Origin: Haliotis rufescens
Lineage: Eukaryota
NCBI RefSeq assembly: GCF_023055435.1
Contig: NW_025963780.1
Span: 44,144,001-44,208,000 of the forward strand
DNA: 64,000 nt
Direction: 5' to 3'
Shown here in pieces: positions 3,126 through 57,916 of the stretch. The position numbers and the translations under genes were made by a program. Numbering within the stretch: the first letter of the stretch is position 1; each line of letters starts with the position of its first letter. The notes beneath the pieces are model-generated. The model saw only the letters and a list, made by a program, of their open reading frames with translations, ran no database searches and was not told the origin of the DNA.

Positions 3126-3180
3126 ATGTGGACGAAGTGGCACGCATCACACTCTCTGCTGATATGGATAACGCTGCAAG
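3126..3180 (+). CDS. Receptor paralog A, signal-peptide exon (MWTKWHASHSLLIWITLQ)
   Basis: ttctccag acceptor upstream, ATG at 3126, phase-1 donor G|gtatgt; 55-nt coding part conserved in all 4 copies. Confidence 0.75.
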
Positions 3181-3841
3181 GTATGTTGTGATTATTTTAT
3201 GACAAATGATAGCATCTTTGTGTCTGAGTGCAGTGTTATAAGAATGATATGTCTACAGTGTCATCAGTGCTATACTGTGACAGTTACATTAATTTATACA
3301 AACACCGTCTAAAGCTGGTGGTGTTTCGTTGAAGAGGTTCATCAAACTGTTACATTGATCAGGTTCAGATTCATTTATCCTCTGTAAGATGGCAGCAATA
3401 TGAACAGCTAATGGTGGATTGAACTTGTAAAAATTAAAAGTAACGAAAATAATCAAAGTCCTATTAAAATATCAGGTTTGTGTTTGCATTTTCTGTTTGC
3501 AACTTACTTGAAAGTAAATATATATGGTTTTGACCTTATTATCAGTGTAGGTGCATAAGTATGCTTATTGCATGTTTCGGTGGATAATCTGCACTGGTTA
3601 TTCTCCTGTATCGACAATTTTTATTTAGTGAGTTCAAGAGGTATATCGGTTGTCCAGATACCTTATTGTAGGTAACGATCCACTATCGTAAAAAACATTT
3701 ATACAAGTCTTCAATAACAATTTTGCCTTCGCAGTTCTATGTCCAGCTGTATGTATGTAATCATATCATCATTTGACTTGTCGATGTGACGTTAAGTTTT
3801 AATTCACTCACTCTTTAGTCTCAATTAATTTGCATTCACAG

Positions 3842-4237
3842 TTCTATGTACAGCTGTCTCTGGCCTGAGACACAAGACTGCCTGTTACAATTTCCTGTTG
3901 ATGGTCGATCCTCCGTGTGCCACTACAGAGATGCTTCTTCCTACCATGTTTACACTCGGGGTGTCTTCTGACGTCACATGTCACAGTGAAATAACTGGAA
4001 CCAGCTTAAGACAGAAGGGTCCAGACGAAATCAGACGTTGCTGTCAACAGCGTGAGAATGATACCGTGACAGATTACTGCCTCCCTGCCATGAAGAACCA
4101 ACTCCCGGGTCACAACTACCTGGACTTTGTGAACACGTGCACTGCCGCTACAAAATGTCAGCTGTCAACACCTGGTGGTACGGTGCAGCATACTGATGGT
4201 GAAGACTATGTAACATTCACGTTTGAATGTGTGCACA
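3842..4237 (+). CDS. Paralog A, Cys-rich domain 1 (degenerate SUEL/Gal-lectin-like)
   Basis: ttcacag| ... CAC A|gtgagt; 396 nt, phase 1-1; VLCTAVSGLRHKTACY...CC...C...C...DYVTFTFECVH. Confidence 0.85.
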
Positions 4238-5732
4238 GTGAGTTGTGTCCGTCATAAACTTAATGTTATCAGCTTCCTATATGTCCCACAGGACACACTT
4301 TACCATTTTAGCCTACACCTGGTGTCATCACTAGTTTCAGTGATCCGTTCACATAATGTTCATCGGTACTTTGCCTATAAATATCAGTGGAACCTGGGGA
4401 GATAATCGAGACTGGTTATTCTCTGGCGTTGACGTCTCATAATTACTTGCCACTCGTGTAATGGCGTCCAGGCACTTCTACTATTCTATCTGTTGCCCAT
4501 TCTTTCATTGTTGCAAGCTTTTGGACTAAATTATAACATGCCTGGTTATAATTTCATGCTTTGCGTTTCTTTATTTTGTAATTGTACAATACAGTTGTTT
4601 ATACACAATAAGTCATTTCAGGGAGAGATATTTGCGGTCAGTCGTGACTCTGTTAATTTGCAACAAGAAACAACTACTATGTGGTTTATAATGTGTTCAC
4701 GGTTAATTTGAAAGAGATGGAGGCATGACCCGCTCACCCTCCCGAGGCGTTGTGACTGTAACTTTCTATGTTGCATCCCTCATCCCTCTCTTGATCGATA
4801 ATCATGGTTCTGATTCTCAATTTCGTCCTAGTAAGAGCCTTGTTTTGTCAGTGTCACTGAAGTAAATGTCTGTGACGTGCAGCTTGTCCTTGGGCTTCTC
4901 GCGGCTCTGATTCCATATTCGTCCTGTAATGAACCTTGTTTTGTCAGCACCACTGGCGTGTATATGAGTTTCACTGAAGAAAATGTCTGTGACGTGCATC
5001 ATGTCTTTAGACTCCCTGGCCGAGTTGGCCCAGTCGTCCAAGACGCCGCAGTCAACACTGCAGAGTCGCGTCAACGAGACGTACCAGAGCCCTATAATCA
5101 TGTGTAGGAATCCAAGATTGTCCTGATGGGCACGCCAGTAACCTGTGATTGTGGGTTCGAATTCCGGTTCGCCCCGATTATATTTCTAGGTTTGTCAGCA
5201 CCATAACCGTTGTCGTGGGTTTCACCAAAGTGGTAAACGTCTGAGACCTGCATCATTTTGGTCTTTCCTCCGAAGTTACCGAAGTTCAGCTGACACACCG
5301 TGATATAACTTGAATACTGTTAAAAGCGGCATTATACCCAACTCACTCACTCGCTCACTCACTTATGTGTCTTGGTTTCTGTCAGCATCATACCAGTGGT
5401 CGTGTGTTCTACCAATGTGGTAGAAGTCTTTGACGTACATCAGTTTTGGTTTCCTCACAAACTAAGCTGACAAGCAATGGTTTAGTCAAATATTGTACAA
5501 AGCTGCTTTAAACTCGCCCACTCGCACTTGGAAATTGGAAAGGAAAAATAGATATATTATTCAATATATTACATCATGTTAAAAGCTTCATTTGGTCTTT
5601 ATTATGTTTGATGCTATTAAAAGCATGTGGTTAATGGATATTGTATTAAATACCTATTTACATCGAATACTTGTACATCTACCATCGTGTTAGAAGTATA
5701 CATAACTTTAATTTCTTGGCCAATCTTTTCAG

Positions 5733-6083
5733 AGGACACGGTGCTGCACATCCAACATGATTCTCCACACACAGGACAGGAGGTGTACCTGTACAACGAC
5801 CAACATGACGGGATGGCCCATGCTAAATGTCTAGCATACTCTCACGAGTGTAACTCCCATGTCATAATACAACTTGCTGCAACCCGAGTTGTGTCTCCCG
5901 CCTGCAGTGTGGACTTCACTGATGGGGATGTGTCAACCAAGGTGGACTGTAAGAACCCACCTGCATCAAGAAACTGTTCCAGCGCAATGTTTGAGAGCAA
6001 GTCCAACTATGTTAACATGTCAATATTCATGACAGTCGATCCTGGGCGTCAAGAAAAAGAATTTCTGTGGCTGCTGGCGAAAG
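5733..6083 (+). CDS. Paralog A, domain 2 (CUB-like beta domain, tentative)
   Basis: ttttcag| ... AAA G|gtaagt; 351 nt, phase 1-1; highly similar exons in B, C, D. Confidence 0.85.
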
Positions 6084-7717: not shown

Positions 7718-8083
7718 CGGATACAGGTAAGAATGTTACCGTCGTCTGTGGAGCCACCATTCCTGCAGATGTGTCACTGAACTGCCCAACGCCTGCATCA
7801 ATTACTACGACATCAACTACTTCAACTACAACTACACAAACAGTGACGTCCAATAACGCCTCCAGCAACCACGCACAGATAGCGGTGACATCATCACCTG
7901 GTCAACCACAGACACAACCTTCAAAATCAACGGCAGCAGGGACAACGATGCACAGCAATGACTCTACCACGCTATCGTTGTCCAGTGTGAACGGCTTTTC
8001 CTCCGTCATCACTCCCCGCCATCCCGATCCAAACTCTCCCACAACACTCGCGCAGCAGAGTGGAGTCACAGAAACGACGTCAG
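7718..8083 (+). CDS. Paralog A, end of domain 2 plus Thr/Ser-rich mucin stalk
   Basis: gttgcag| ADTGKNVTVVCG...TTTSTTSTTTT...; 366 nt; the donor G|gtacac is weak but shared with C. Confidence 0.75.
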
Positions 8084-8283: not shown

Positions 8284-9903
8284 CAACTCGTCATAAATAT
8301 CGCACCACACATTTTAAAGTAAAAGTAGAAAAGATAATTTTCGGTTTTTTAAACTACAAGTACATATTTCATATACTACACCATCTGTGAACATAATATC
8401 ACAAACACACCCTGTTCCAAGCTGCACGTGCATGCTTGCGTTGAGCATGCTTGTACCGGGGGTCCGTTTGCTAAAAATGCAGTATGCACACAGCCTCTTT
8501 TGGCGTATGTTATGTTGGCAGACACAGCTAAAATTTGGTTTTAGGCATAAATTAAGCTTTATTTTGACCAACCAGTGAAGTGCCCAAGCGTCCAGTGCCT
8601 CTGAACCAAAGATGGCAAATTATTGGTGTGCACCAGACTGGTATGTCATGTCGTGCTATTGGAGCACAACTGAACATTCATCACACTGTCATCAGCTGGC
8701 TAATACGTAAGAATACTGCTTCCGGTGTAGTGAAGGATGCACCGAGGTCTTGACGTCCCAGAAAAACCAATGACAAGGAAGATCGTGCTCTCGTACGCCA
8801 AGCCAGACGAAGCCCAAAGTCTACTTGTACACAGCTGCGACATTGATGGCATCCATACAACAGAGTGTCCATCAGCACCATCAGACGACGCCTTAATTCT
8901 GCAGGATTAAGAGCAAGACGACCAATCAGACGTCCACTCCTCACAAATCAGCACCGCCATGCACATGCTCGCTGGAACCTGAGGACATGGAGAAGGATCC
9001 ACTGGTCCGATGAAAGCAGATTTTTGCTGCATCATACAGAAGGGAGGGCACGAGTTTGGAGGCAGAGAGACACAGCATATGATCAGAGGAACATTCAAGC
9101 TGATGTTCCATTTGGGGGTGGATCCGTCATGGTGTGGGGGTGTTGTTCCTATGATTGTTAACTTGACCTCATCACAGTTCCCGGAACACTGAATGGGTAG
9201 AGGTACCAGAACTTGATCCTGGACGGTGCTGTTGTGCCTCATTTCGATAATCACGCTCTCGCCACACGTCCAGTCTTTATGGACGATAATGCCAGACCAC
9301 ATCGTGCTCGAGCTGTTTTCAGCATCTCCAACACTACGCCATTGAGACACTACCCTGGCCTGCCAGAAGTCCAGACATTAATCCTATTGAGCAATTGTGG
9401 GACATTTTGAGACGTAGGGTGAGAGCAAGGGATCCTCCAGTTCATAACCTTCAGGAATTGACCCATGCATTGCATGATGAGTGGCAGCAGATCCCCCAAC
9501 AGAGATTCAGACGTCTGGTGACCAGTATATGACGGCGTGTCGAAATTGTTATCCAAGTGCGAGGCGGTTACACCAGATACTGAGTTAGCCAGTCATTGTG
9601 GACCTTACTAGTGTGTTTGACATTAATGAAATGTGAACTGTGTTGTGTGGCTGTTGTAACGACTTCGGCAGCCATACTTATTTCACCTTATTTCACGGTG
9701 ATTTCAGTGAACTTTGGTTTGCTACAATCAAACCCTCAATTAGTGCTCAAATTCGGTCTTGTGTTGTCAATTTTCTGACTGAACGCTCACATGAGGCCAT
9801 ATAAACAGTTTAATGTGCATTTTTAAGCACCATTTTTATGAGGTTGAAGATCCAGTTTTACTCAGTGAAAAAAAGTGGGTGGTGCGATATTTATGACGAG
9901 GTT
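8284..9903 (+). mobile_element. Tc1-family DNA transposon, near full length, decayed transposase
   Basis: TIRs caactcgtcataaatatcgcacca / tggtgcgatatttatgacgag flanked by TA; motifs WSDESRF, FMDDNARPH, SPDINPIE broken by stops and frameshifts. Confidence 0.92.
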
Positions 9904-10859: not shown

Positions 10860-11870
10860 AACAGAATGTACAATAGCAAGGTTAGTATCAGAAGATGTTG
10901 TAGTATTTCCATATTAGACTGAATCCAAGTCGTATCCTATTATATAATAGTACATATTGTTCCGAAGATTGCAGTAGTTGCAACATGAAAAGAGGTCATG
11001 TCTAGGATGTTCATAATGATATCCACAGGAACAGGTAGTAGAATCATGAATATGTCTATGATATTTGTGTGCATTTAAATCACTGCATCTTAACCTGAGG
11101 CGGCAATGGAGAATTTGACAGAAACGGGTACCATAGTCTAAGTTAAAGTCAAATATTTGAGCATTTTCTGTTGTGATGATACATTTTGTGAAGCCATATA
11201 CAGTACATTTTGATTGAACATTATCCGGTAATTCATTCGACATTCGCACTGTGTTGGGTAAAAATTATTTGTAGTGATTAACTGTTCTGGCATTTACAGT
11301 CTGTAGCTGTGAAGGAGTTCTTAAATTGAAACATGCGCCCACTGAGACATTCGGAGGATCAAGATTACATAGATATTCAGGGGCCAACTTATGAACCACT
11401 TTGTAAAATGTTTTTAACGTATGAGATTGCCGTCGTTTGGATAAGGGTGTAAGGTTGGTTTCAGGGTATAGAGACTCGTGACTGGTACCACGAGTAGCTC
11501 CACATATTGTTCTCAGTTTGTCTAAATTTAGCCTTTCCAATACCAACGCTTGATCTTCAGAACGGTTATCCCATACCTTGTCACAATAGTCGAATATTGG
11601 TAAAATAAATGATCAGTATAATTTCTCTAACTTTTCTGGACAGGCGGCATTGGAAAGTTCTGGAGCAGTTAATCATCGGGCTAACTTTATCGACTATATT
11701 GTCTATATGATTTGGCTAGTAGCCATCTTGCTGTTAAGTTAGACCTAGGTGTTTGTGCGATGTGACCTCTGTTATTGGAGTACTTTTCTTTTTACGAACA
11801 GGTTTTGAACTTGGATTAATTTTTGTTGAAAACATTATGTTTTCAGTGTGTGTGTCTTTCGAAATGTAGC
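10860..11870 (-). mobile_element. LINE ORF2 3' relic (second copy ~39330-40330)
   Basis: LRTICGATRGTSHESLY..L..RR..H.L..FYK and HCRLRLRCSDLNAH...CSCG..E...H...C. Confidence 0.75.
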
Positions 11871-12678
11871 AAGTTGTTCGACTGCCCATTGTTTTCGGTG
11901 CTTTAGATTTGGTACCGCCCACAATCTGTCGTCTTACATTGGGAGAGTATTTTAAGTGTTTAAGGTTTTATGTACGAATCACGTGTGGACAATATATGTA
12001 AACACTTGGCAGTTCATACTACTCCTGCTTGGTTGTGTGTGACATTGTTGGCCATGTTGACACTTCATTGACTTTCTTAATCTGCCTCTAGTAGTTACAA
12101 GTTACAATTTGCTACCTATTGCTGAAACAATGTCACATAGCCACATCCACTTATTGTAAGACCTCGTGGGAGACCTCTGAAGATCCGGGGTAGATCTTTA
12201 GCAACCCATGCTTGCCATAAAAGGCTACTTTGCTTATCGTAACGGGATCGGGTGGCCAGGCTCGCTGACTTGGTTGATGCATGTCAATGTATTCCAATTA
12301 CGTGGATCGATGCTCATGATGTCAATCACTGGATTGTCTGGCCCAGACTCGATTATTTACAGCCTGCCGTCATATAGCTGGAATATTGCTTGGAGCAGCG
12401 TTAAAGAACAAACAAACAAACACGGTCTCCGGGGAATCCGGGTGAGAAAGGTTCAATGGAACCCGGTTGGTTGTATGAGGCGACCACGTGCGATCAGCAG
12501 GTGCGTTTTGGCTGGTTGCATGTCATACTGTACCCATGACTTTGATCGGTGCTCATGTTTTCTTTCACATATTTGTCAGGTCAAGATTTGATTATATCTC
12601 ACCTGAATATGGCTGACTGCAGTGATAATCAACAGTTACACACCCACTCTAAAGATATTATATGTATCGTGTTGTCAG

Positions 12679-12756
12679 AGGCCACTTCACCAATGGATAA
12701 AGACATATCAACTCCAGCTGCAACAACAGAAACTGTTCCTTCAACATCAAGTAAAG
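12679..12756 (+). CDS. Paralog A, short stalk exon (EATSPMDKDISTPAATTETVPSTSSK)
   Basis: gttgtcag| ... AAA G|gtattc; 78 nt, phase 1-1; homologues in C and D. Confidence 0.7.
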
Positions 12757-13736: not shown

Positions 13737-13824
13737 AAGCGGTTATCATCGGCAGCAGTGTGGGAGGAGTCATCATGATAGCAATCATAGTGACAATCAC
13801 GGTCTGTGTCCGACGAAAGAAAAG
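13737..13824 (+). CDS. Paralog A, transmembrane exon (EAVIIGSSVGGVIMIAIIVTITVCVRRKK)
   Basis: gttaacag| ... AG|gtaaaa; hydrophobic stretch followed by basic stop-transfer RRKK; frame absent from the ORF track. Confidence 0.8.
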
Positions 13825-14114: not shown

Positions 14115-14772
14115 GCAATTCAAGAGTATGTTTGTAATTGATCTTTCATCTATCGTTGATAAAATCATCATACATGGTTACTGAGATTATGCATATCAGT
14201 GAAAACACTTCTTATTTCCTATACTTCCGTTAAAAACATGATATAAAATAAGTTCAGGACGATTGTTTGTGGGTGTCAACTTCGGTATTATGAGGAACTC
14301 AACATTTCAGAGTATATGCTAACTCCCTCATCCGGTGATATGAATTTGCTACATCCTTTCACCGGATGAAGTAAGCCTATACACGTAAATGTTGTGTTCC
14401 TCAGAATAAAGTAGTTGACATCCATAAATTCTCTTTCTCATGTATATCACTTTTATGCCATTCAAAGACTTGATATATTATGTTGATATCGAATGTGTAT
14501 TAGTTGTGTTTCTCAGTTTCGACATATTGCATACAACTGTCCTTGAGGCAATGAACACTCCATCATTGGTCTTTCTGGTGCCTGAATACAATCATGGTGC
14601 AATTATGGTATATTGATCGGTATGAAGTTAAATAATATATCAATCGGTTCCAAGATGAAGTATTCCAAAATTAAGGCTATGCACACGTGCTTATACAACA
14701 AGCGGAGCAATATATGTATTGCACATAAAAAGCCATCATTATACCTACTGAATTTATATTTTCTAGAAACAG

Positions 14773-14827
14773 TTTAGAGAAACAAATCCAACACGTGGAC
14801 ACAATGAAGAAAACCACTAGGATGTGA
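14773..14827 (+). CDS. Paralog A, last exon: truncated tail SLEKQIQHVDTMKKTTRM*
   Basis: aaacag| acceptor as in C; 1-nt deletion relative to C gives TGA at 14825; C-like tail sequence continues out of frame to ~15160. Confidence 0.55.
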
Positions 14828-15599
14828 ACGGTCAAACGGTGCCCGGAACTCTGTAAGTGATGGATACGTGCCTAACCCAATCTATGAAGGAACTGATGAC
14901 TACAAGCTGGAGCAATTGCACAGAAAGACTAGCAGTGACATTAAAGATGGCTATGAACCAGACACGGAGTCACCTTGTGGCTTCACGCGATCAGGACCAG
15001 AACGTTTAGGCCTCAGTCTTGACAAAACCTCCCTGGTGACGCAAGGACACCTTGACTATTTTGACGACATAGTTTTTAATACAGAGCCAACTGGGGGACA
15101 TTCAGAAGCGAAGAGCGATGGTAGAGTTTCAGATCTCTATGCCAAGGGGAACAAAGCACATCATGTGCATCTACACATGGGCGTATTGTCATGCATTTTT
15201 AAATTACACATGACAATGAATTAAAAAAATATGTTCTCACTGGATCTCCACAAATTGGGATGCTATTGTGCTTAAAAGCAAGGTTACAATCAACATAGGT
15301 AATTCTTTCACATCTATTATTTAATTGCTATTAAAGGTATGTTCTCCAAATATGTCGCACTTGTAAAACGTCTTATAGATTTTAGCTCAAGCTCGTATTT
15401 ATCCTTTTCTGTCCACGTGTGTTGTTCATTCTGCAGTAACAGATGTTTACTTATTAGTGCATATAGTTGTCTATTGCTTGTGTTTATTGATTTTTGAGTG
15501 AAACATTTTTGCGCATTTTCCCAAACTTTGCTATTTGTGAGCTATGTTCCATTAACTATGTTGTTCATACATATCCAAAGTGCGGGTGTAATTCTTTGT

Positions 15600-17815: not shown

Positions 17816-18969
17816 CACTCTTCAAAGAAAGAAATGCACAGGTAGATTTTGCGTAAATTTATTGTACCTAATAAAGTAGATAAATTTAATTTAATATCAT
17901 AGATACAAATATAATATTTGGGAGCTCGATAGTCGACTGCTGTCGTTTTTCAAATGCATTGAAAACTGTTCATTGTCATGTTACGTAAGTCCACAAGGTT
18001 GCACTGAACTCAGTATCTCATGTGACTGCCCCGGGCAGCAATCACGGCTCTGCATCTCATCGGCACTGACTGGATAAGTGTATGAAATCTGTCCTGCGGA
18101 ATTCTGCGCCATTCTGCTTGTAACGCGTTGGTCAGTTGTGGGAGTGTCTTCGGCGTGTTCATTTCGACGACGACAAACACGTTGTCTTCCATCTCGCCGG
18201 TGAAGAAGAAATCATTATTCGTTGCTAAACCACACTCGTCTCCAGTTTCTCGAATTCCAAGGCTGTAAGGTATGGGACCAACGCAAGCGTCGCTGTCGAT
18301 GGATCTGTTGGAAAACAGGGACGCTAACTGGTCACCAGGGTTGGTCTCCAGCCTCGCGAAGATGGTTCCTGACACTGGTCCTGACACTGAAGATGGTCCG
18401 ATATCCTCCTCAAATCAGGGATGCGTCCTGCAGTATTCGTAGCTGTTGCATTGCAGGGGTGGTAACTCTTGGTCGGCCGGTTCTCGGACTGTCTGCAGTG
18501 GAATTGAACGGTGTGTATCGGTCCCAAATGGTGAAAATGTTGCAGTGGTGGACGTTGAAGTGGCGTGCAACAGAAGACTGCGATTCCCTCTTTGAATACG
18601 TCCAATTGCGATGTTCCGATCGGCAGCGCTGGGTCTTGGCATTTTCGAACTTGAAAAATGTTGACAACTGAATGACAAATTATTGGCTTATGCTTGCCTT
18701 TCTATAGCCACTACCACGAGTTACGAATGCCAGAACTTGCACGTGCATTTTGCTTTACTGTTTTCCTCCATGACATTTTTTTAACAAGTGTGAAAACAAT
18801 ACCATTTGAGACATTAAATCGACAATGGCTGCGTTTTGACACACCGTGTGTCGAATATCAGGCCATCAACATTTTCCAACAACATATATCCAATTTATAT
18901 ACCGATGTTTTTGTGTAGTCAGGTTCAATGAACCACATACTACCTGTGCGTTTCTTTTTGTGAAGAGTA
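17816..18969 (-). mobile_element. Tc1-family element, internally deleted
   Basis: TIRs cactcttcaaagaaagaaatgcacaggtag / ctacctgtgcgtttctttttgtgaagagt in TA context; N-terminus MPRPSAADRNIAIG, motif PRTGRPRVTT, C-terminus RCRAVIAARGSHMRY. Confidence 0.88.
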
Positions 18970-19323: not shown

Positions 19324-19745
19324 NNNNNNNNNNNNNNNNNNNNNNNNNNNNNNNNNNNNNNNNNNNNNNNNNNNNNNNNNNNNNNNNNNNNNNNNNNNNN
19401 NNNNNNNNNNNNNNNNNNNNNNNNNNNNNNNNNNNNNNNNNNNNNNNNNNNNNNNNNNNNNNNNNNNNNNNNNNNNNNNNNNNNNNNNNNNNNNNNNNNN
19501 NNNNNNNNNNNNNNNNNNNNNNNNNNNNNNNNNNNNNNNNNNNNNNNNNNNNNNNNNNNNNNNNNNNNNNNNNNNNNNNNNNNNNNNNNNNNNNNNNNNN
19601 NNNNNNNNNNNNNNNNNNNNNNNNNNNNNNNNNNNNNNNNNNNNNNNNNNNNNNNNNNNNNNNNNNNNNNNNNNNNNNNNNNNNNNNNNNNNNNNNNNNN
19701 NNNNNNNNNNNNNNNNNNNNNNNNNNNNNNNNNNNNNNNNNNNNN
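19324..19745. other. Assembly gap (N run)
   Basis: Ns. Confidence 1.
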
Positions 19746-22041: not shown

Positions 22042-22645
22042 CCCAGGAAAGGTGGCTTCCATCCATCTGATTCCTTGTGGGTAGCATCAGATACATACTT
22101 ACCTAAAAGGCACACGGGTATATGTATACGTCAGTGAACATTTTTGTTTTATGTAGACACAAGTTTTTGCTTCATGTTTTGTGATATGGTGTCATGACTG
22201 ATTTTCAGTGGTCCATTCATATAAATTTCACAGATGTTTTGCCCTTTACTCCAAATGAAATGTGTTTTTTACATAGTTTTGTATATTTGTAACCCTTTGA
22301 CTCATTTGCCTTTTTTCCAAGTGTTCATGTCTAATCTAGAACCGTGTCATATAATACTATGTTTTGAGATCCCGATATACGTTTTAAAACTCGTATTAGA
22401 AATAATTCCGGCTGCTTTTGAAAAAACTTAAATAGATGAGAGTATAAGTATTATACCCAATATACTTGTGTTTTCTACAGAACAGAGACAGTGCATCATG
22501 GAACTGTATAAAAAAAATAAAGAGGTGTCACTCTCTATGTTTGTGGGTGTTTATTTACTGTGTTAAACTGTCAAAATACCCTCTCCTATAGACCCTGATA
22601 TCGAACATCTGAATGGGTGTTTCTCCAGACCTAGACCACACCAAC

Positions 22646-38366: not shown

Positions 38367-38579
38367 NNNNNNNNNNNNNNNNNNNNNNNNNNNNNNNNNN
38401 NNNNNNNNNNNNNNNNNNNNNNNNNNNNNNNNNNNNNNNNNNNNNNNNNNNNNNNNNNNNNNNNNNNNNNNNNNNNNNNNNNNNNNNNNNNNNNNNNNNN
38501 NNNNNNNNNNNNNNNNNNNNNNNNNNNNNNNNNNNNNNNNNNNNNNNNNNNNNNNNNNNNNNNNNNNNNNNNNNNNNNN
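38367..38579. other. Assembly gap (N run)
   Basis: Ns. Confidence 1.
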
Positions 38580-41151: not shown

Positions 41152-41226
41152 AGGCCACTCCACCAATGGATAATGACACATCGACTCCAGCTGCAACAGA
41201 AACTCTTCCTTCAACACCAAGCAAAG
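41152..41226 (+). CDS. Paralog C, short stalk exon (EATPPMDNDTSTPAATETLPSTPSK)
   Basis: gttgccag| ... G|gtactc; 75 nt. Confidence 0.7.
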
Positions 41227-42285: not shown

Positions 42286-42373
42286 AGGTGGTTATAATCG
42301 GCTGCAGTGTGGGAGGAGTCATCATGATAGCAATCATTGTGACAATCACGGTCTGCGTCCGACGAAAGAAAAG
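42286..42373 (+). CDS. Paralog C, transmembrane exon (EVVIIGCSVGGVIMIAIIVTITVCVRRKK)
   Basis: gttaacag| ... AG|gtaaaa; 88 nt. Confidence 0.8.
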
Positions 42374-43136: not shown

Positions 43137-43680
43137 TTCAGAGAATACTAATCCAAAACGTTTACTCATGGAGGAAAACCACGAGGATCGGAACGAGCCA
43201 AACGGTACCCGGAACTCTGTAAGTGATGGAAACGTGCCTAACCCAATCTATGAAGGAACTGATGACTACAAGCTGGGGCAATTGGACAGGAAGACTAGCG
43301 ATGACGTTAAAGATGGCTACGAACCCGAACTGGAGTCACCTTACGCGTATGGCTTCACGCGATCACGGCCAGCACCTTCAGGCCTCAGTCTGGGCAAAAA
43401 CTTCTGGGTGACACAAGGACACCTTGAGTATTATAACGACACAGTTGTCAATACAGAGGCAAGTGGGGGACATTCAGAGGAGAAAAGGGATGATAGAGTT
43501 TCAGATCTCTATGCCAAGGTGAACAAAGCACGGGGCACTGATCAGGTGACGGATGTGTATACTCAAGTAGACAAACCAAGGAAGCCTGCTCGTGGAACAT
43601 CCGGGCAGTACTCTGCTGGAGAGAACCCAGGGCAGGATGAGGACATTGATGCCATGTACGCAAAGGTTCAGAAGAAGTGA
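43137..43680 (+). CDS. Paralog C, cytoplasmic tail with NPIY, LYAKVNK, VYTQVDK, MYAKVQK
   Basis: aaacag| phase-2 acceptor in frame with ORF 43168-43680; summed exons 1893 nt = 630 aa + stop. Confidence 0.85.
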
Positions 43681-45699: not shown

Positions 45700-46700
45700 A
45701 ATTAAGTTATCACTCTTGTTATACAGTATTGTGGAGATTGTTTTGTCACTCTGAATCTTCATGCATAGATCTAAATATGAAACGGATGAGTCGGTCTCAC
45801 TGGTCTCCTATATTTCTAGTTCAGGTGGGTAAATCAGTGGAAGGGAATTGGCTATTTAATTGCTATTGAACGATAGCAGATCATCGACATACCTGAAGCT
45901 TAAGCTAAACTTCTTGGCCCAATTACCTCGTTTTGACTTTGCCAATCCGAATAGAAATTCTTATTCATATGGATAAAGAAACAGATCCACAAGAAGGGGA
46001 GCACAATTGGCGCCTATGGGGATCCCTACTGCTTCCCTAAATGTCCTACCCCCCAACTTTACGTAGGTGTTATCAATGAGGATGTCCAGCATTTCACATA
46101 CTGTTTTCTCAGTAAACTTCAGATGGTATTTGCTTTCATTTTTCACAAATTCTCCTGAACCTCTGAATATAGATATGTAACTGTGTCTGTGTACACCACG
46201 TTTTGTAACAAAAAACCCATGAAGTTTTTCGTTAAGTTTGTCATGTGGGATAGTAAGTTTTTGAATTTCTTCCTCAGGCCTTATATGTGGCATTATTTGA
46301 TATATCATTTATACCCAGTTCTTTGATCATACAATTTATGTAGTGATGCTTACATATGATGGTTATGTTATTTGATGCCTTGTCAGTGGGAACAACTACA
46401 GACTTTTCATGTTGGGCAGCCAGACTTAGGATAACAGCTGGCTGGGACAGAATGGTTTTATTTCTATTCCGTTTCCTCTTTTTAAGTTTGTGGGTTCTAA
46501 AACTGACAACAGCACGCACTGACTTAAAAACACGAACGAATGCAATAACCTTTCAGCGATTTCTTTGGATAACACTGTGTTCGATTCACTTTAACGTTCA
46601 AGGAAGAGAACTAAATGTAAGTGTCAGATCTGTATTTTTATCACAGTCAGTAGACTGTCGTTCGGTGTTCAACGAAGTATTAACAATTATTTTGTAAGTT
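45700..46700 (-). mobile_element. Penelope-like reverse transcriptase relic (paralogous to 15600-16800)
   Basis: VVVPTDKASNN and GIPIGANCAPLLVDLFLYPYE. Confidence 0.8.
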
Positions 46701-49700
46701 ACAAAAAATCGTTCTGCCAAATCTTTCATTACTGGGGTATCTATTATTTATTCATTTTCGGAAAGCTTCACATGGTTGAAATATGTTCCTTGTGCTTTTA
46801 GTACATACGTCTCCGGTTATGAAATGGAAATGGAAATGGAAAAACAGCGAGGGAGTGGAGATTTTTGAAAGACGATGAAAGAGACTATGGAAATGCTTTT
46901 TGTTGCTTTTATTTAGAGAATGTGGAGTCAGACATTTTCCAGCAATCAGTACATCTCATTGGTCTTTGGATAAATGACATGTATGCGTTGCAGGAAATGC
47001 TATGTGTCAAGCAATGGCGTCATTACGTAAACGCTCCACACGAAATGATATTGGCAGTCTGGTATTATCTGTGACACAAATAATTGCCATCGATAAGATA
47101 ACGTATCGGCGTGCAAGGAAATGATATAAGAGCGTAGGTGTGTGTGCCTTGGACTTTAAGTATCATTATCAGCGGAGAAACACTTCGTGTACACAGATGT
47201 AAAGCACATGGAAGGCCACTGCGTTAATTTAATTTAAGAGCTGTGTATGTGTATGTGTGCGTGTATGTGTTTTTAAATATATTGTTTCAATCACACTTAC
47301 AACTACGCACACATTACTTTAATTAGATCCCACGATATCAAAACGTTTATGAGATTTGCATGAGATTTGCTTATTGCGCAAAGTAATGATAGTACTAAGA
47401 CATCTTCCTGAGGCAAGGGAGTTCAGTGACTGTAATGGCCCAGCTTCCACCCTTGCCGAACTATGTTGGCATTTCTGAGTTCGATCGTAGCGCCACCAGC
47501 GGCTATTGCGAGTTATGTCCCTTCTACGTCCCTCCTACTGACCAATCAGATTCCACTCTGATATCACTTGCTTTTGGTTAAAACAAAATGGCGCGGTCCT
47601 GTCTAGAAGATCTGATCGATAATCAAGATCTATATTGTAATGAAACGGGTCTTACTTCGCGAAGTGTATCAAATCACGCGAGCTACTTGATTAAAAAGTT
47701 TTTTTTAAATATCTGTTGACACTAAGCTGACGGTACACATGCATTGCACATTTTGCAATCGACCGAAATCTGCACGTCAATTTATGATTGACAATGAATA
47801 GACTCCTTAGTCCAGCCAAAATTCTGTAACTCTGTAATTCGAGACTAGTTTGGCAAGGGTTGAAACTGGACTTTTATAGTAGGCTAACTCCCTTGCCTCG
47901 GGAAGATGATAGTAACAGTATTTGCATTATTTATGAACAACAACAATTTAGCAAAACAGTGACGATTATAGTGATGTCAGTTGTCTCAGAGATGCTGCGG
48001 GAGGACACCAAGGCCCACTTCGTGACAACACCCGGAATGTCGAATGTCGTTAATTGAACAGCAAGGATAACCAACGCATATTTTGTCGTCCTTCTATGAA
48101 GGACGTTTTTTTGTCATTACAGTGACGTGTATTAATATTCTGAGAACCTTGAAGCATCCTATTGATAACAGTTGCCTATCAGGCGATTATATGTCCCTCC
48201 AGTACAATTGTGTGTGTGGTAATCTATACATCTGCATACCACTTTTAATCTAGGTCTACAATCGAATTAGGTCTTCAGCAACCCATTTCGTGGATCGATG
48301 CTCATGATGTCAATCACTGGATTGACTGGTCCAGACACGATTATTTCCAGACAACCGTCGTAAGGCTGGAATATTGCCGAGTGCGGCGTTAAACAACAAA
48401 CAAACAAACCTAAGATTTGATTAAATGATATTGTGTGTTATTCTCATATCTCATGTCTTGACAGCTATCACATTGATACTAATGGTACTTCCTGCCTTGG
48501 AATGTTATTCTGCAAACACAACTGTCACACCAGAGGTTGTGGTCGTCCTCCTATCACCTACGATGTCAAGGGTCCAGGTGCAAGCTTGCAGATGATACTC
48601 CGGTTTACCTCACCTGTCATAACTATCAGTCAAAATGCAGATAACATGAATATCTTGCTGAAATAAACACCCTGTTAATGATATATGGCAGGAAAAAAGA
48701 TGTCCAGTCAGAGTAGGGAGATAACGCTGCCTCAGATAAATACCTCATCGCAGCCCAAGGAGTGTCACATTCGATGTATGCACGTTCCCGCTCAACCGGT
48801 GGTCCCATGCTCCAAGACTGATATCTCCCTAATCAGTGTTGTCTTGTTGACAAAAAAGTGCGCTTTTCAAGAAATGTCTAATTTCTGGGCGATAAACTTC
48901 ATGGCTACAATCCAAATGAGGATCGGCAGTTTGGTGACTCGCAGGGATTATATGTAGCCGTGACTTTGGCCAACAGCGTTTTAAATACTACATCTGCACG
49001 TATTTTTCTTTCAGACCGTGCTGGTAATGTACGTAAGCTGCACATACTGCTAAATATAGCCGCTCGCAATCACCTGACTGCCGACCCTCGCTCGTTATCC
49101 TATCTTCGTAAATTACTCATTGTGATATGGTGTGATTCTATTTCAAGTGGCGAGGACTAGAGTGAAAAATAAATGAATTAAAATCATTGGTGACACCAGG
49201 TGTTCTCTACCAATAGCACCCGACACATTCAGTGTGGAATATTCACTGTGGTCCACCCATTACTATTGTCTTACTGTTAAGGGCCCTACCGAGCTATACA
49301 CATAAAACAAAACGCACTGGGCAAGTAGGACGTAAATTTTATTGTATATACCTCATCAGTATACAGTAATTACATCGGCTTCGTCGTCTTCAAGAATCAC
49401 CTGGCTGCGTCACTGCTAACTGGCATGTTAATGATAAACGCGTGTCATAGAACTTCAGGGGCGGTCGGATAGCCTACTGGTTAAAACGTTCGCTCGTCAC
49501 GCCGAAGACCCGGGTTCGATTCCCGACATGGGTACAATGTGTGAAGCCCATTTCTGGCGTCCCCCGCCGTGATATTGCTGGAATATTGCTAAAAGCGGGG
49601 TAAAACCATACTCACTCACTCATAGGACTTCATTATGAAGTTTCAATTATGTATGTATTCTAATTTTAAATTAAGTAGACAAGTTAAGTTATTTCTATAC

Positions 49701-50135
49701 AATACTGAATTGATCTGTATGCCAAATGTTACGATATAGCCAGGGACGTGTTCTGATGTATGAATAATATGATGACACAGCCTAGAGGTCAGTTGATAGT
49801 GCGATGGGAAAGACGCCCTGTAACAATGAATACAAAAATTAATATACAAACATAACTCCGCAACGGCTGTGTTCATGCACAAAATGCACCAAAAACCTAA
49901 ACAGTAGTTTTAAATAACAATCTACTACACCTATAGGATATTCATGGTATGATATTCTACAATCATAAGCTTAAGGTGATATACTAGTACTTAGATATAA
50001 CATTCACACACATAAAAAATAAATAGAACAATAACATAACTATAATATATCAAAGTCGTACGTTTAGGTTGCACAATATATATATTTGGTGAAACCCACT
50101 AGGGTGCATCGTAGAGGTAGAGTGGATAACTGCCC

Positions 50136-50608
50136 ACGATATACCTGTCCATGATATACCTGTCCGTGATATACCTGTCCATGATATACCTGTCCATGAT
50201 ATACCTGTCCATGATATACCTGTCCGTGATATACCTGCCCACGATATACCTGCCTACGATATACCTGTCCATGATATACCTGTCCATGATATACCTGTCC
50301 GTGATATACCTGTCCATGATATACCTGTCCGTGATATACCTGTCCATGATATACCTGCCCACGATATACCTGCCCACGATATACCTGCCCACGATATACC
50401 TGTCCATGATATACCTGTCCATGATATACCTGTCCATGATATACCTGTCCGTGATATACCTGTCCATGATATACCTGCCCACGATATACCTGTCCGTGAT
50501 ATACCTGCCCACGATATACCTGTCCATGATATACCTGTCCATGATATACCTGTCCATGATATACCTGCCCACCATATACCTGCCTACGATATACCTGTCC
50601 ATGATATA
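50136..50608. repeat. 15-bp minisatellite (ATGATATACCTGTCC and variants), ~31 copies
   Basis: Direct tandem repetition; source of the spurious MDRYI/MIYLS ORFs. Confidence 0.95.
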
Positions 50609-52256
50609 CAACACATAAACACGTTCCTATTTACAGACATATGTAAATTACATCTCGATTATCTTTAAATCATGAGTACACTACACAAGTTACTGAATAC
50701 ACACATTATTCCACCTCGACCAAAACACAAATAAAATGAAATATATCTAGTAAACATCCACTATCTACACACAAACACAAGTATATGTAGTATGCTAAAA
50801 TGGTATTAATGAGATTTAGACATTTAGGTATGGAATGGAATAAAAATACATAGAACACAATAATAACGTTAAATGCGAACATTCCAATTACATTAAACCC
50901 ATCCCAGTGCCAAGTGAAGTGTGAGAGGGGTGCAGTGGGGAGGATAAATGAGGTAAAATGAGGACACACAACAACAAAACAAAAGACCATGAGTTTACTG
51001 ATAGTGCTTAGCTGACGACTACTTAAGCAGCAGCCTGAAATGAAAAGTACAATTGTATGTCAATCAATGAGGAGAGTTACTTGATAAATCTGAAATAAAT
51101 ACAATAAATATGTGTTAGTAAATGCATTATCTGAAATATCCAGAATTTGTTGATTAACATACCAAACCAAATAGCTTATTCACAATTCATGATCAATATA
51201 CACAGAAACTATACCATACTACAACTACAATATATTATTTCACGTAAACAAGGCATGGTGAGTGCGAATAATCAATATAATCTACAGAAATAGTGGTAGT
51301 ATTGCAAATGGATATTCCTGTGTTATGTAATACGACATTGGTAATACTGCTCTATCATATTTGTACCACCTAAAGCTCAACTTTGGCGAAGGAACATCGG
51401 TAACATATTTGTGATCACTTCGATTGACACATAACGTTATAAATTTAAAGGAAAATGCCCAGAATGCATGATATCTTTTAATGCGACATTGACAACTCCT
51501 CAACAATCGTGTCAACTCAACTGTTGGAGTCCCGCGTATCTAACTTCACTGATGTTCTACTGTCAGCTCGACACTATGGTCAGACTTGAGCTTAGTGGAA
51601 TTGATCAGAGATATGGCCCAGTAACTGAACTTCTAGGCAGTTGTGTATTGTCGGGTATCATTTGAAGATGATGAGCATCTTTGGCTGGTTGGTTGGTTTG
51701 TTGTTTGACGCCGCACTCAGCAATATTCCAGCTATATGACGGCGGTCTGTAAATAATCGAGTCTGGACCAGACAATCCAGTGATTGATATCATGAGCATC
51801 GATACACGCAATTTGGATCGATGACATGTATCAACCAAGTCAGCGAGCCTGACCACCCGATCCCGTTAGTCGCCTTTTACGACAAGCATAGTCACCTTTT
51901 ACGGCATGGGTTGCCGAAGACCTATTCTACCCCGGAATCTTCACGGGGCGTGAGCATCTTTGAAGCAAATACCCAACTATAACGTGATGGTTGAGGGATG
52001 AGGTACACAAACTTTCTAGGAGTGATAACGAAGCGAAAAGAAGCATATTATTAAACAGAATCACTTGTGTTAGATTTGTTCATGTAAACCTGAAGTCAAT
52101 GTTAATGTCAATCGATCAGTTGGTGATAACGAAAGCACAATATTATCTCCATCACTTTGTGCGATTTGAGCATGTATTATTATTGTTATTGTTATCTCCT
52201 GAGATACTGAAGGATCCCACACAAGGGACATCACCTAAGGGAGCCAGTATTAAATA

Positions 52257-52675
52257 TTACATTAGCTTCACATCAAACTTCAAACTTTGAATATCTTTCC
52301 TTGGAGTTTCTTCTGTTGAAGAAAGAGTTTCTTGTGTTGAAAGAAAAGTTTCTTCTGTTGAAGGAAGAGTTTCTTGTGTTGAAAGAAAAGTTTCTTGTGT
52401 TGAAAGAAGAGTTTTTGTTGTTGAAAGAAGAGTTTCTTGTGTTGAAAGAAGAGTTTCTGTTGTTGAAAGAAGAGTTTCTGTTGTTGAAGGAAGAATTTCT
52501 TGTGTTGAAGGAAGAGTTTCTGTTGTTGAAAGAAGAGTTTCTTGTGTTGAAAGAAGAGTTTCTGTTGTTGAAAGAAGAGTTTCTGTTGTTGAAGGAAGAG
52601 TTTCTTCTGTTGAAGGAAGAGTTTCTGTTGTTGCAGCTGGAGTTGATATGTCATTATCCATTGGTGAAGTGGCCT
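52257..52675 (-). CDS. Paralog D, terminal exon with expanded 7-aa mucin repeat ([TEQ]ETL[LP]ST)n
   Basis: gttgtcag|EATSPMDND...; 21-bp coding minisatellite; the donor of A (G|gtattc) reads G|atattc, so the frame runs on to KDIQSLKFDVKLM*. Confidence 0.65.
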
Positions 52676-53236
52676 CTGACAACACGTTACATATAATGTC
52701 TTGAGAGTATTCAGATAGCGTTAAAAACAAGTGGGTGTGCAACTATTGATTCTCACTGCAGTAGGCGATATTCAGGAGAGATAAAGTCAATTCTGACCTC
52801 ACAAACATGTGACAGAAAACATGAACACCCATCGCAGTCCTCGGTGCACGATTACAAGCAATCAGCCCAAGCCGCACCTGCTGATCACATTTAGTCGCCT
52901 CGTACAACAACCAACCGGGTGCCGTGGAACTTGTCTGACCCGGATTCCCACGAGGTATCAAAACAAGTGAATGTGGGTATATGACATGGTTTAAGCAATA
53001 GGTAGGGAATTGTGAATTCTTACTTGAGGCAGATTAAGAAAGACAATGAGGTGTCAACATGGTAACTATGTGCACATGGGGAAACAAACACTAAAACTTG
53101 CAAAGGATTGTGTGTGGTACGGCATTAAAAGAAAAAAATTCTAAAGTTGTTTTAGCATGTGATGTTTTTTATTAACTCTGTTACTATGGTTGTCCTTGCT
53201 GGCGTTACTGTTGCAGTTGCTGTGCTCGTGGCTTAC

Positions 53237-53377
53237 CAGTTGATGGTGTTACCGCTACCGGTGTCGGTTCCGAAGCAGTTGATTTCGTAGTAGTTGATGT
53301 AGATGCTGGGCAGTTCAGTGACACATCTGCAGGAATGGTGGCTCCACAGACGACGGTAACATTCTCACCTGTATCCG
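53237..53377 (-). CDS. Paralog D, short stalk exon (SDTGENVTVVCGATIPADVSLNCPASTSTTTKSTASEPTPVAVTPST)
   Basis: atttgtag| ... ACT G|gtaagc; 141 nt; read-through would meet TAA 10 codons later. Confidence 0.7.
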
Positions 53378-54176: not shown

Positions 54177-54527
54177 ATTTCGCTCGCATCCACAGAAATT
54201 CTTTTTCTTGACGTCCAGGATCGACTGTCATGAATATTGACATGTTAACATAGTTGGACTTGCTCTCAAACATTGCGCTGGAACAGTTTCTTGATGCAGG
54301 TGGGTTCTTACATTCCACCTTGGTTGACACATCCCCATCAGTGAAGTTAACACTGCAGGCGGGAGACACAACTCTGGTTGCAGCAAGTTGTATTATGACA
54401 TGGGAGTCACACTCATGAGAGTATGCTAGACAGTTAGCATGGGCCTCCCCGTCATGTTGGTCGTTGTACAGGTACACCTCCTGTCCTGTGTGTGTAGAAT
54501 CATGTTGGATGTGCAGAACCGTGTCCT
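54177..54527 (-). CDS. Paralog D, domain 2
   Basis: ttttcag| ... T|gtaagt; 351 nt. Confidence 0.85.
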
Positions 54528-54629
54528 CTGAAAAGAATGGCCAAGTCATTAAAGATCAAATCTTGTGCACGTACGGGGCCATTTAACAGTAATTCGGTAA
54601 AGGGATATATCACATCACAATATTCCTCG

Positions 54630-55318
54630 TATTGACCGTCAGAAGGAAATGTTCCTGGTATTGACCGTCAGAAGGAAATGTTCCTGGTATTGGCCGTCAG
54701 AAAGAAATGTTCCTGGTATTGACCGTCAGAGGGAAATGTTCCTGGTATTGACCGTCAGAAGGAAATGTTCCTGGTATTGACCTTCAGAGGGAAATGTTTC
54801 TGGTATTGACCGTCAGAGGGAAATGTTTCTGGTATTGACCGTCAGAGGGAAATGTTTCTGGTATTGACCGTCAGAGGGAAATGTTTCTGGTATTGACCGT
54901 CAGAGGGAAATGTTTCTGGTATTGACCGTCAGAGGGAAATGTTCCTGGTATTGACCTTCAGAGGGAAATGTTTCTGGTATTGACCGTCAGAGGGAAATGT
55001 TTCTGGTATTGACCGTCAGAGGGAAATGTTTCTGGTATTGACCGTCAGAGGGAAATGTTTCTGGTATTGACCGTCAGAGGGAAATGTTTCTGGTATTGAC
55101 CGTCAGAGGGAAATGTTTCTGGTATTGACCGTCAGAGGGAAATGTTTCTGGTATTGACCGTCAGAAGGAAATGTTTCTGGTATTGACCGTCAGAGGGAAA
55201 TGTTCCTGGTATTGACCGTCAGGAGGAAATTTCCTGGTATTGACCGTCAGAGGGAAATGTTCCTGGTATTGACCGTCAGAGGGAAATGTTCCTGGTATTT
55301 ACAGTCAGAGGGAAATGA
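54630..55318. repeat. 29-bp minisatellite (TATTGACCGTCAGAGGGAAATGTTTCTGG), ~23 copies, in an intron of D
   Basis: Direct tandem repetition with no spacers. Confidence 0.95.
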
Positions 55319-55417
55319 ACACAGTCGATTAAATATGAGTGTTGACTTATGCGTTTCCTTTTTGGAAAGTATATGTATAGGTAGCTTAAACATAAACTCA
55401 TAATGGACACTACTCAC

Positions 55418-55813
55418 TGTGCACACATTCAAACGTGAATGTTACGTAGTCTTCACCAGCAGTATCCATTACCCGACCTCCAGGTGAAGATAGCTGACAT
55501 CTTGTAGCAGCCGTGCACGTGTTCACAAAGTCCAGGTAGTAGTGATCCGGGAGTTGGTTCTTCATGGCAGGGAGGCAGTAATCTGTCACTGTATCATTCT
55601 CACGCTGTTGACAGCAACGTCTGATTTCGTCTACTCCCTTCTGTCCTAAGCTTGTTCCAGTTATTTCACTGTGACATGTGACGTCAGAGGACACCCCGAG
55701 TGTAAACATGGTAGGAAGAAGCATCTCTGTAGCGGCACACGGAGGATCGACCATCAACAGGAAGTTGTAACAGGCAGTCTTGTGTCTCAGACCAGAGACA
55801 GCTGTACATAAAA
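55418..55813 (-). CDS. Paralog D, Cys-rich domain 1
   Basis: ttcacag| ... A|gtgagt; 396 nt; within ORF 55410-55853. Confidence 0.85.
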
Positions 55814-56275: not shown

Positions 56276-56573
56276 CACTCACTCACTCACTCACTCACTC
56301 ACTCACTCACTCTAATCACTCACTCACTCATTCTACTCACTCTACTCACTCACTCACTCTAATCACTAATCACTCACTCACCCATTCTACTCACTCTACT
56401 CACTCACTCACTCACTCACTCTATTCACTCACTCACTCATTCTACTCACTCTACTCACTCACTCACTCACTCTAATCACTAATCACTCACTCACCCATTC
56501 TACTCACTCTACTCACTCACTCACTCACTCACTCTATTCACTCACTCACTCACTCACTCACTCACTCACTCAC
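56276..56573. repeat. (ACTC)n compound microsatellite
   Basis: Direct reading. Confidence 0.95.
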
Positions 56574-57240
56574 TTGTAATTGATACTCATTGCATCTGTA
56601 CCTGCTTGTTTGTAGCCAAACCAAATTAACTTGCAGCGGATTGCAATTGGAAGACCAAGCATCATAATCGTGGGATGCGAATCCCGTCAAGCGGTTCCTT
56701 GCACAGTTAAGGAACTTAACGGCGAGATACGGTGTCTTAGAACATTTGGTCACCCGTTTCCCCACCCCCTCACACACCGATGGTCGACAATGTAGAGCAT
56801 TTATTAATTCCTTTGATTTATAAATGCATGACACCTCAGAAATATTACAGGAAGTGGCTTATAAACAATAGATCATTTTTAACAGTTATGAAAAATTCCC
56901 AAAGTACACAACCATATGAAACAGCCCTACATATTTGAGAAGTGTTCAGCTTTGCCAAAACTAATCTCTTGTTCTTATACAGGCCAATGGAATTGTATCC
57001 GTAAAGAAGATAGAAGATGCAATTTGCAAACTTTGGTATTCACGAGTAAATGCATTGCATCATTACATCTACAAATGACAGCTATGTCCAACCAAAGTTC
57101 ACTGTGTCTCTCAGAAACTCGTACTGGCCTGGCTACTCATGTATAGTGTTGGACTGTCTTAAATAAAGCTTCATTATCGGTAACAACGTGAACTGCGTAG
57201 CCGAATTTCAGTAAGTTTACATCAACAGGTATGTTGTGAG

Positions 57241-57590
57241 GTGGTGAGGTGAAATTGGGTTTAACGTCGTGTCCAAGATTATTGCACTTATATAGCGACG
57301 TGCATGCACGTGTATGTGTGTGTGTGGCTGCTTGTACTAGTCCGGACTGATGCCGATTTATAGTGCTAGCTCACTGAGAAACCATGCCGCAGTTTAACAT
57401 GAATACCCCACTCAGACACAGTATACTGACTCCGAGCCGACCAGTCCTTGTTTTAGCCCCTTAATGCCGAGCGCCAGACAGGGTAACAAGTACAATCTTT
57501 TAACGTCTTTTTGTATGACGCGGCCCGGGATCGAACCCTGGACCTTCCGCTCTCCGGGCGGACGCTCTACCACAAGACCACGGAGGCGGT
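57241..57590 (-). mobile_element. tRNA-derived SINE family 4, MetaSINE-like core (tentative) (also 13210-13563; partial 693-884, 41944-42122, 58960-59095)
   Basis: gtggtagagcg/ggttcgatccc boxes, core gactggtcggctcggagtcagtatactgtgtctgagtgggg; TSD caggtatgttgtga. Confidence 0.82.
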
Positions 57591-57861
57591 CAGGTATGTT
57601 GTGAACATATATAATCTTCATATGTTCACTTTCCAATGTTCAATCTTCAAGTTCAGTCTACGAATAGCTGTACACATTGCTGTCATCGAAATGAGTGAAA
57701 ATAATCTGATAAATGTAACAGTTTGATACTACTTCAACCAAACACCTCTACGTTTAGCCTGTTCACATACATTTAGTACATTTAGCACAGTATATGCAAC
57801 ACTCACGTCACCATACACAAGATGTTGGCATGATTCCTTCATACAAATTATCACAACATAC

Positions 57862-57916
57862 CTTGAAGTATAACCCATGTCAGCAGAAAGAGGGACCCTC
57901 GCCACTTCCTCCACAT
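57862..57916 (-). CDS. Paralog D, signal-peptide exon (MWRKWRGSLFLLTWVILQ)
   Basis: Minus-strand ATG at 57916, G|gtatgt donor, 55 nt. Confidence 0.75.

Follow-up and report, generated by a model that had tools for sequence, protein, structure and literature searches.

A 13-gene tandem array in Haliotis rufescens with a common lectin/CUB-like head and two tyrosine-motif tails: a putative convergent analogue of vertebrate paired receptors

Paired activating and inhibitory receptors with homogenised ectodomains belong to the textbook repertoire of vertebrate innate immunity, and to our knowledge the described ones are almost always built on Ig or C-type lectin domains. In this work, a stretch of 64,000 nucleotides from the abalone Haliotis rufescens (contig C2, 44,144,001-44,208,000; the whole stretch is called the window, and positions are counted from its first letter) was analysed, and the four paralogous genes that it contains, G1 to G4 (also A to D), were found to be the distal four members of a 13-gene tandem array (C2:44.018-44.202 Mb, 184 kb). 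The four share a layout of signal peptide, Cys-rich domain 1 (D1), domain 2 (D2), and a small two-Cys domain (D3) with a mucin stalk. In the array, this head is followed by one of two kinds of 3' module, called B-type and C-type, which encode the transmembrane (TM) segment and the cytoplasmic tail. We consider it fairly probable that this is a Haliotis-only array in which a lectin/CUB head combined with two tyrosine-motif tails forms a convergent analogue of the paired receptors. If this is true, a gastropod locus would offer a clear case of convergent evolution of paired-receptor genomic logic on an unrelated head, the shared logic being two old tails, a converted common head, and a turnover by birth and death that includes truncated members. 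Abalone immunology, a field of importance to aquaculture and to withering-syndrome research, would moreover gain a concrete, testable receptor family.

The closest described systems are the vertebrate paired receptors (KIR, LILR, SIRP, PILR, Ly49, and subsets of Siglec and CEACAM). Like them, the abalone genes lie in a tandem cluster, with near-identical ectodomains, two TM/cytoplasmic classes, ectodomains homogenised between the classes, and a birth-and-death turnover that includes pseudogenes as well as truncated and secreted members. By analogy with these families, a homogenised head on separate 3' modules can be taken as the signature of paired receptors. Unlike them, the abalone head consists of a lectin-like domain, a CUB-fold domain and a mucin stalk in place of Ig or C-type lectin domains, the host is a gastropod, strict inhibitory motifs of the immunoreceptor tyrosine-based type (ITIMs) are missing, and the immune role is putative. 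Moreover, Tyr motifs of its own are present in the short-tailed abalone class, whose TM segment offers no charged residue to an adaptor with an immunoreceptor tyrosine-based activation motif (ITAM). A second comparison is offered by the latrophilin/EVA-1-type SUEL membrane proteins, which carry an N-terminal domain of the rhamnose-binding lectin (RBL) type, as the abalone proteins probably do; the best fold matches of D1 are latrophilin Lec and SUL-I. Unlike in these proteins, the abalone D1 has no Pfam SUEL_Lectin match and the YGR/DPC/KYL motifs were not seen in it, a CUB fold and a mucin stalk follow, and the protein has a single TM segment with Tyr-motif tails and is not a G-protein-coupled receptor. 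Third, CUB receptors such as neuropilin, Kremen and CDCP1 are likewise single-pass proteins with ligand-binding CUB modules, and superposition of D2 on CUB domains gives Z 8.2-8.8; the abalone proteins differ from them in the lack of a sequence-level CUB signature, in having only one CUB-like domain, and in their partner domains and tails. Finally, the C-type tail resembles those of the engulfment receptors Draper, CED-1 and MEGF10 in combining NPxY with further YxxV/L-type sites, whereas the EMI/EGF ectodomain and the canonical ITAM are missing in the abalone.

Self-comparison of the window by BLAST gave four homologous gene-sized blocks, three on the plus strand and one on the minus strand. 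Together with alignments and the mapping of NCBI proteins, it bore out the sequence-only reading, which had placed four paralogs with a shared head on phase-compatible exons at these sites. Phase 1 is found at the end of the signal-peptide exon, the D1, D2, D3/stalk and sixth (ex6) exons are of phase 1-1, the TM exon runs from phase 1 to phase 2, and the tail exon is of phase 2; AG/GT borders are conserved in the aligned presumed exons of the paralogs. All four genes had already been modelled by NCBI under the name 'uncharacterized' only. G1 corresponds to P0002 (LOC124125038), G2 to P0047 (LOC124120904), G3 to P0027 and P0028 (LOC124120898, isoforms X1 and X2), and G4 to P0037 (LOC124120917). 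Followed codon by codon, these models fit the window exactly, with GT-AG introns, and that of G2 terminates at a TAA after D2.

The cluster is larger than the four genes that had been proposed. A six-frame search of the animal's own genome found 13 D1 and 13 D2 copies at C2:44.021-44.200 Mb, along with six C-type tails and six B-type TM/tail modules. Exon probes applied to the window plus 130 kb of DNA upstream gave four B-C pairs in succession, then a B-type gene, G1 (C-type), G2 (B-type), G3 (C-type), and an inverted D (G4). The repeat units are ~30 kb long, and D1 and D2 are 77-89% identical among the 13 copies. Intactness was checked exon by exon for length, frame, stops and splice sites, with the repetitive stalk excluded, and about seven of the 13 copies look intact: the B-type genes g01, g03, g07 and g09 and the C-type genes g02, g08 and g12 (G3). 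Among the others, the TM exon of g04 contains a stop and its tail is wrecked, D1 of g05 contains a stop, D2 of g06 has lost 1 bp, and G1, G2 and G4 are damaged or truncated. Instead of the 'four different outputs' claimed from the window, there are two ancient ones, B and C, plus degraded derivatives. The window is thereby recast, as far as its sequence can tell, as part of a paired B/C array that displays one apparently working C and three degraded members. The 3'-module trees are partly congruent with duplication of whole pairs, in that the g01~g05 relationship accompanies g02~g06. All other pairs disagree, and a simple pair-unit duplication model was rejected; the discordant trees fit unequal crossing-over plus conversion. 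Turnover of the family follows a birth-and-death pattern.

The B and C 3' modules, each present six times, cannot be aligned together, and no homologue of the tails was found outside the array in the six-frame search of the own genome. The tails were compared among H. rufescens, H. cracherodii, H. rubra and H. asinina. The B tail is 51 aa long with five Tyr, and DVY[NTD]TT, HTYSTV, TYANT and YEY[HY]NQ are kept in all four species; its YxN motifs are TYANT and the final Y[HY]NQ. In the C tail, NPIY-x-TDDYK, SDLYAKVNK, D[VIM]Y[TAS][QK]VDK and [ML]YAKVQK are kept across the same species. Splits within the genus Haliotis lie tens of millions of years back, and the two TM/tail modules are old and conserved between species. 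The split between H. iris and H. rufescens, for example, was placed at ~39.9 Ma (PMC13544226).

The heads give a different picture. In the D2+D3 tree, the H. asinina B copy joins the H. asinina C and H. rubra B copies (92/97), apart from all H. rufescens and H. cracherodii copies. Monophyly of the B type was rejected by the approximately unbiased (AU) test (delta lnL 33.7, p-AU 0.00076), for a B group that had been defined after an earlier tree was viewed. The D1 and D2 trees of H. rufescens only are unresolved stars with no B/C split, and the synonymous divergence (dS) is 0.142 for B-C vs 0.135 for B-B and 0.122 for C-C. Because the heads group by species lineage and the B-C dS equals that within types, the heads are taken to be homogenised across the types. 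Homology between B and C genes covers the exons plus 60-230 bp of flank, and C/C introns align in full. The simplest reading is recurrent gene conversion of the head exons across B and C, with the 3' modules left alone.

In terms of signalling, NPxY motifs recruit adaptors with phosphotyrosine-binding (PTB) domains, Y[AT][KQ]V fits the preference of the Csk SH2 domain, and YxN that of the Grb2 SH2 domain. We hypothesize that one and the same ligand, probably a glycan, is recognised by the proteins of both types. The C tail could then engage PTB-domain adaptors through its NPxY and suit Csk-SH2 through three Y[AT][KQ]V sites, and the B tail could suit Grb2-SH2 through two YxN sites. With these partner preferences, B and C would signal differently from a common ligand-binding head, and the B/C pair would be a convergent analogue of vertebrate paired receptors. 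The A and D forms are real, because H. cracherodii P0034 and P0036 share their C-termini. They could conceivably act as signal-less decoys, and an origin as decay products explains them equally well. The more ambitious version, a true paired-receptor system independent of vertebrates in which same-glycan binding is coupled to opposing haemocyte signals, with converted heads and A/D decoys, is offered tentatively, and we would put it at rather less than an even chance.

The genes of the array are predicted to encode type-I membrane glycoproteins with an O-glycan-type Ser/Thr/Pro stalk, one TM segment and a cytoplasmic tail. None of the exons of the window genes matched any Pfam profile, including those of SUEL_Lectin and CUB. 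An AlphaFold (AF2) model was made of P0037 with a 23-row family alignment (mean predicted local distance difference test, pLDDT, 74; predicted template modelling score, pTM, 0.71; D2 near 90), and D1 and D2 were compared by VIA against 48,161 PDB representatives. For D2, almost all of the top ~20 rows were CUB domains (Z 7.6-8.8, ~103 residues, root-mean-square deviation 2.6-3.2), among them those of C1s, MASP-1, neuropilin, cubilin, TSG-6, PCPE-1, spermadhesin, Kremen and Gpr126. D2 thus has a CUB fold, yet it is not a sequence-level member of PF00431; an ESM Atlas search with D2 gave weak PPC-type/beta-sandwich leads only. D1, which has a pLDDT of 49-90 within the P0037 model, matched the Lec domains of latrophilins and SUL-I, a rhamnose-binding lectin of sea urchins (Z 5.3-5.5, 83-87 residues). 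In the ESM Atlas feature search it scored 0.95 to SUEL_Lectin clusters, which supplied 21 of the 30 matches. Its eight Cys are conserved even in distant paralogs on contig C445. With moderate confidence, D1 can be regarded as SUEL/RBL-like by fold and language-model features, and not as a sequence-level member of PF02140. Foldseek with the whole model returned weak jelly-roll rows only (TM-score < 0.22), and an attempt to build a SUEL profile from the own genome, for a profile-profile comparison, yielded just two partial exon matches.

The range of the family was examined with single exons or NCBI proteins as queries. HMMER with D2 over 1.84 billion representatives found 11 proteins, and a profile search 33. 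All relatives that have a name or a species are from Haliotis (H. rufescens, H. cracherodii, H. rubra and H. asinina); neither is given for the short fragments P0006 (from Logan) and P0049. Those with a name are called 'uncharacterized', or the mucin stretch has lent them a wrong one, such as 'serine-rich adhesin for platelets-like', 'GspB-like' or 'kinase dst1-like', so that the locus corrects the annotation of several members. No mention of the four LOC ids, or of such an architecture for Haliotis, was found in the literature. The earlier statements that this is a non-Ig family without a recognised name, with near-identical ectodomains and differing cytoplasmic regions, were upheld. Three distant paralogs lie at C445:27.89-28.13 Mb (P0007, P0010 and P0011). 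They are ~30-38% identical in D1/D2, and in them the lectin-like and CUB-like head is joined to giant mucins or to other tails; P0007, with 1794 aa, bears the name 'serine-rich adhesin for platelets-like'.

Several observations weigh against the paired-receptor explanation. The canonical ITIM, [ILVS]xYxx[ILV], is absent from the tails, where the C-type sites DLYAKV, DVYTQV and AMYAKV have D or A at position -2. Neither tail contains an ITAM; in the C tail NPIY is conserved, but the ITAM spacing and consensus (YxxL/I x6-12 YxxL/I) are absent. Neither TM type has a charged residue, that of B being free of K, R, D and E. The paired-receptor analogy drawn earlier gains strength from the cluster as a whole, through the two alternating conserved tails and the homogenised heads, and fails for the canonical motifs and the charged TM residue. 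Pairwise comparison gave a dN/dS of 0.49 in D1 and of 0.44 in D2, and in the variable D1 patch a high pN goes with a high pS (ratio 0.7-0.77). Positive selection in this 'hypervariable patch' was considered and not detected; pN and pS are both raised, so the patch does not demonstrate adaptive diversification. One D2 stretch reaches ~1.0-1.3 at low divergence. In addition, the lectin assignment lacks sequence support: 14 D1 copies gave no Pfam SUEL_Lectin (PF02140) match at E<=10, a D1 profile had no match among PDB sequences, and a D1-only AlphaFold model (pLDDT 52) was too poor for a structure search. Furthermore, six of the 13 copies are broken or truncated, and the lineage with dead tails (g04 and G1) keeps decaying, its member g04 having gone further than its sister G1. 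Gnomon models alone are no proof of expression.

Much of this would equally be expected of a rapidly turning-over family of mucin-type adhesion proteins at the surface or in the glycocalyx, whose tails are alternative anchors without opposing signalling and whose A, B and D members in the window are pseudogenes kept intact-looking by conversion. Such a family would accommodate the broken copies, the further decay of g04, a dN/dS of ~0.45 with positive selection not detected, the absence of strict ITIM and ITAM, and the C445 paralogs, in which the same head sits on giant mucins with unrelated tails. However, the Tyr motifs of both tails are kept in four species although neighbouring residues vary, and B and C alternate strictly over six units. 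Moreover, in G1, after one disabling hit, the three other lesions all fall in the tail (29% of the coding sequence), for which even decay has a probability of ~0.02. The lesion pattern of G1 is weak evidence of constraint on its head and TM; conversion from neighbours could give the same pattern. We regard the adhesion family as the leading competitor and still as unlikely.

The architecture could also serve non-immune recognition, such as gamete, larval-settlement or food-glycan sensing. It is established that abalone have recognition proteins that evolve fast and are duplicated in tandem, and a lectin-like head on a mucin stalk suits any glycan-sensing role. Nevertheless, nothing favours such a role specifically, and NPxY plus YxxV tails, like the paired layout, are chiefly familiar from receptors of immunity and phagocytosis; we consider a non-immune function improbable. 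It is very improbable that each B-C pair is one transcription unit whose head exons are spliced to either 3' module: all exons involved are of phase 1 and P0026 (LOC124120909 X2) joins the signal peptide, D1 and D2 of g07 to D3, TM and tail of the next gene, g08, but this is a single model, possibly a prediction artefact, and each gene comes with a signal-peptide exon of its own and with a homologous region upstream. The joined P0026 model lies at C2:44107780-44129217, upstream of the window, and may be a chimera made by the prediction or the product of genuine read-through splicing between the neighbouring genes.

Within the window, G3 is the only full receptor. Its first coding exon, with the signal peptide, lies at 32799-32886 on the plus strand (ATG of MWRKW at 32832), and is followed on this strand by the exons for D1 (33917-34300), the CUB fold of D2 (35409-35759, by mapping and structure comparison), D3 with the mucin stalk (37701-38096), ex6 (41152-41226), the TM segment (42286-42373, by mapping and alignment) and the intact tail (43137-43680). 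The D1, stalk and ex6 exons were placed by exact mapping. The stalk has 135 aa, 53% of them Ser, Thr or Pro, and one TM helix follows. The TM segment and multi-tyrosine tail reported for this gene were both recovered: on the C-terminal side of the predicted TM core there are 189 aa with 11 Tyr (~180 aa are encoded in the tail exon), and the motifs are NPIY, DDYKL, YAKV, YTQV and YAKV. Isoform X2 (P0028) uses an internal donor of the stalk exon after 37916, by which 60 stalk residues are skipped.

G1 is a C-type gene with a dead tail, which is reduced to a head, a TM segment and a stub of 20 aa. On the plus strand it comprises the signal-peptide exon (3109-3180, with the ATG of MWTKW at 3126; exact mapping of P0002 and alignment), the SUEL/RBL-like D1 exon with eight conserved Cys (3842-4237, phase 1-1), the CUB-fold D2 exon (5733-6083, phase 1-1, by mapping and structure comparison), the exon of the two-Cys D3 and mucin stalk (7718-8083), the juxtamembrane ex6 (12679-12756), which C-type genes have and B-type genes do not, the C-type TM exon (13737-13824, phase 1 to 2) and the tail exon (14767-15160). 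The head exons, ex6 and the TM exon are intact, and the product then ends, as had been read from the sequence, in a Tyr-free stub of 20 residues, RNSLEKQIQHVDTMKKTTRM, whose coding part stops at 14827; the rest of the exon is a relic of a C-type tail, still readable in another frame. Near its start the tail exon has lost 1 bp; it also carries a TAG in the old frame and a further 1-bp deletion, and its 3' third is replaced or lost. The stub is no assembly error, because H. cracherodii P0034 ends in the same one. The TAG is common to G1 and g04, which are sisters in the C-type 3'-module tree (96/96). The NCBI model of G1 has an extra upstream coding exon at 2366-2438, which adds 24 residues before the signal peptide. 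The other genes begin at, or shortly before, the Met of MW(R/T)KW, and this exon may be a 5'UTR exon read as coding.

G2 is read as a B-type pseudogene that was broken twice. Its signal-peptide exon (22613-22700, plus strand, ATG of MWRKW at 22646) and D1 exon (23905-24301) are present, the latter intact. In the D2 exon (26199-26533), a 17-bp deletion at the end removed the last CUB strand (FLWxxAK) with the family-invariant Leu-Trp and created the TAA at 26529-26531. The D3 and stalk exon (27129-27486, 358 nt) has an internal frameshift, and the B-type TM exon (28173-28260, phase 1 to 2) is open but unreachable. The B-type tail exon (28629-28779) encodes YNTT, YTTV and YANT, and 3 additional bp alter its terminal motif. 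The unrelated TM segment and the end after D2 ascribed to this gene were found, the end being due to the deletion and not to a simple stop; its supposedly ITAM-like tail is not a canonical ITAM. In the intron between TM and tail, a dispersed repeat is inserted at 28445-28601, which is absent from the five other B-type genes. This ~155-bp repeat has very many copies in the genome; a search with the 3' region of G2 gave 1952 first-look candidates.

G4 is a truncated C-type gene at the inverted end of the array, with a predicted secreted head. On the minus strand it has exons for the signal peptide (57862-57916), D1 (55418-55813) and D2 (54177-54527), all three mapped exactly, and for D3 with a shortened stalk (53237-53377). 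Its sole stalk donor (53237) is the homologue of the internal donor used by isoform X2 of G3. Behind D3 lies an open frame derived from ex6 (52257-52676), with an intact acceptor, a donor changed from GT to AT, and 15.7 copies of a 21-bp unit. In the NCBI model this repeat is intronic, and D3 is spliced to a terminal exon of 29 nt (49789-49817) that ends in RLSHRTIN; H. cracherodii P0036 has the same C-terminus. The ex6-derived frame possibly provides an alternative, mucin-tailed end. No TM or tail exon follows, and the product has no TM segment under either 3' end. Thus the absence of a TM segment, the lost ex6 donor and the 21-bp repeat described before were all found, and the mucin tail is skipped by the NCBI model.

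The window has two assembly gaps, both non-coding, and neither is touched by an exon or a reading frame. The first (19324-19745) is intergenic, between the last exon of G1 (ended by 15160) and the first of G2 (from 22613), and its flanks match the intergenic DNA of other array units, where they lie 20-100 bp apart in the same order. The second (38367-38579) falls in the G3 intron between the stalk exon (ending at 38096) and ex6 (starting at 41152); its left flank is a dispersed repeat, and the right one is collinear with the same intron of g08. Transposon debris, namely pieces of Tc1/mariner transposase open reading frames, a Mos1-like helix-turn-helix piece and reverse-transcriptase pieces, occurs in introns or between genes at 8681-9350, 11265-11546, 18010-18680, 21124-21339 and 45961-46519. 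Tandem repeats were seen around G4: 32 copies of a 15-bp unit at 50126-50609, on the stretch from the ex6 relic to the terminal exon; 23.8 copies of a 29-bp unit at 54629-55317, inside the D1-D2 intron; and a (CACT)n array at 56276-56574 upstream of D1. A SINE-like element of ~180-260 bp has at least 10 copies in the window, at 372-550, 12240-12420, 27960-28120, 29627-29787, 32318-32574, 34771-34959, 40643-40905, 48282-48409, 51688-51947 and 58122-58269.

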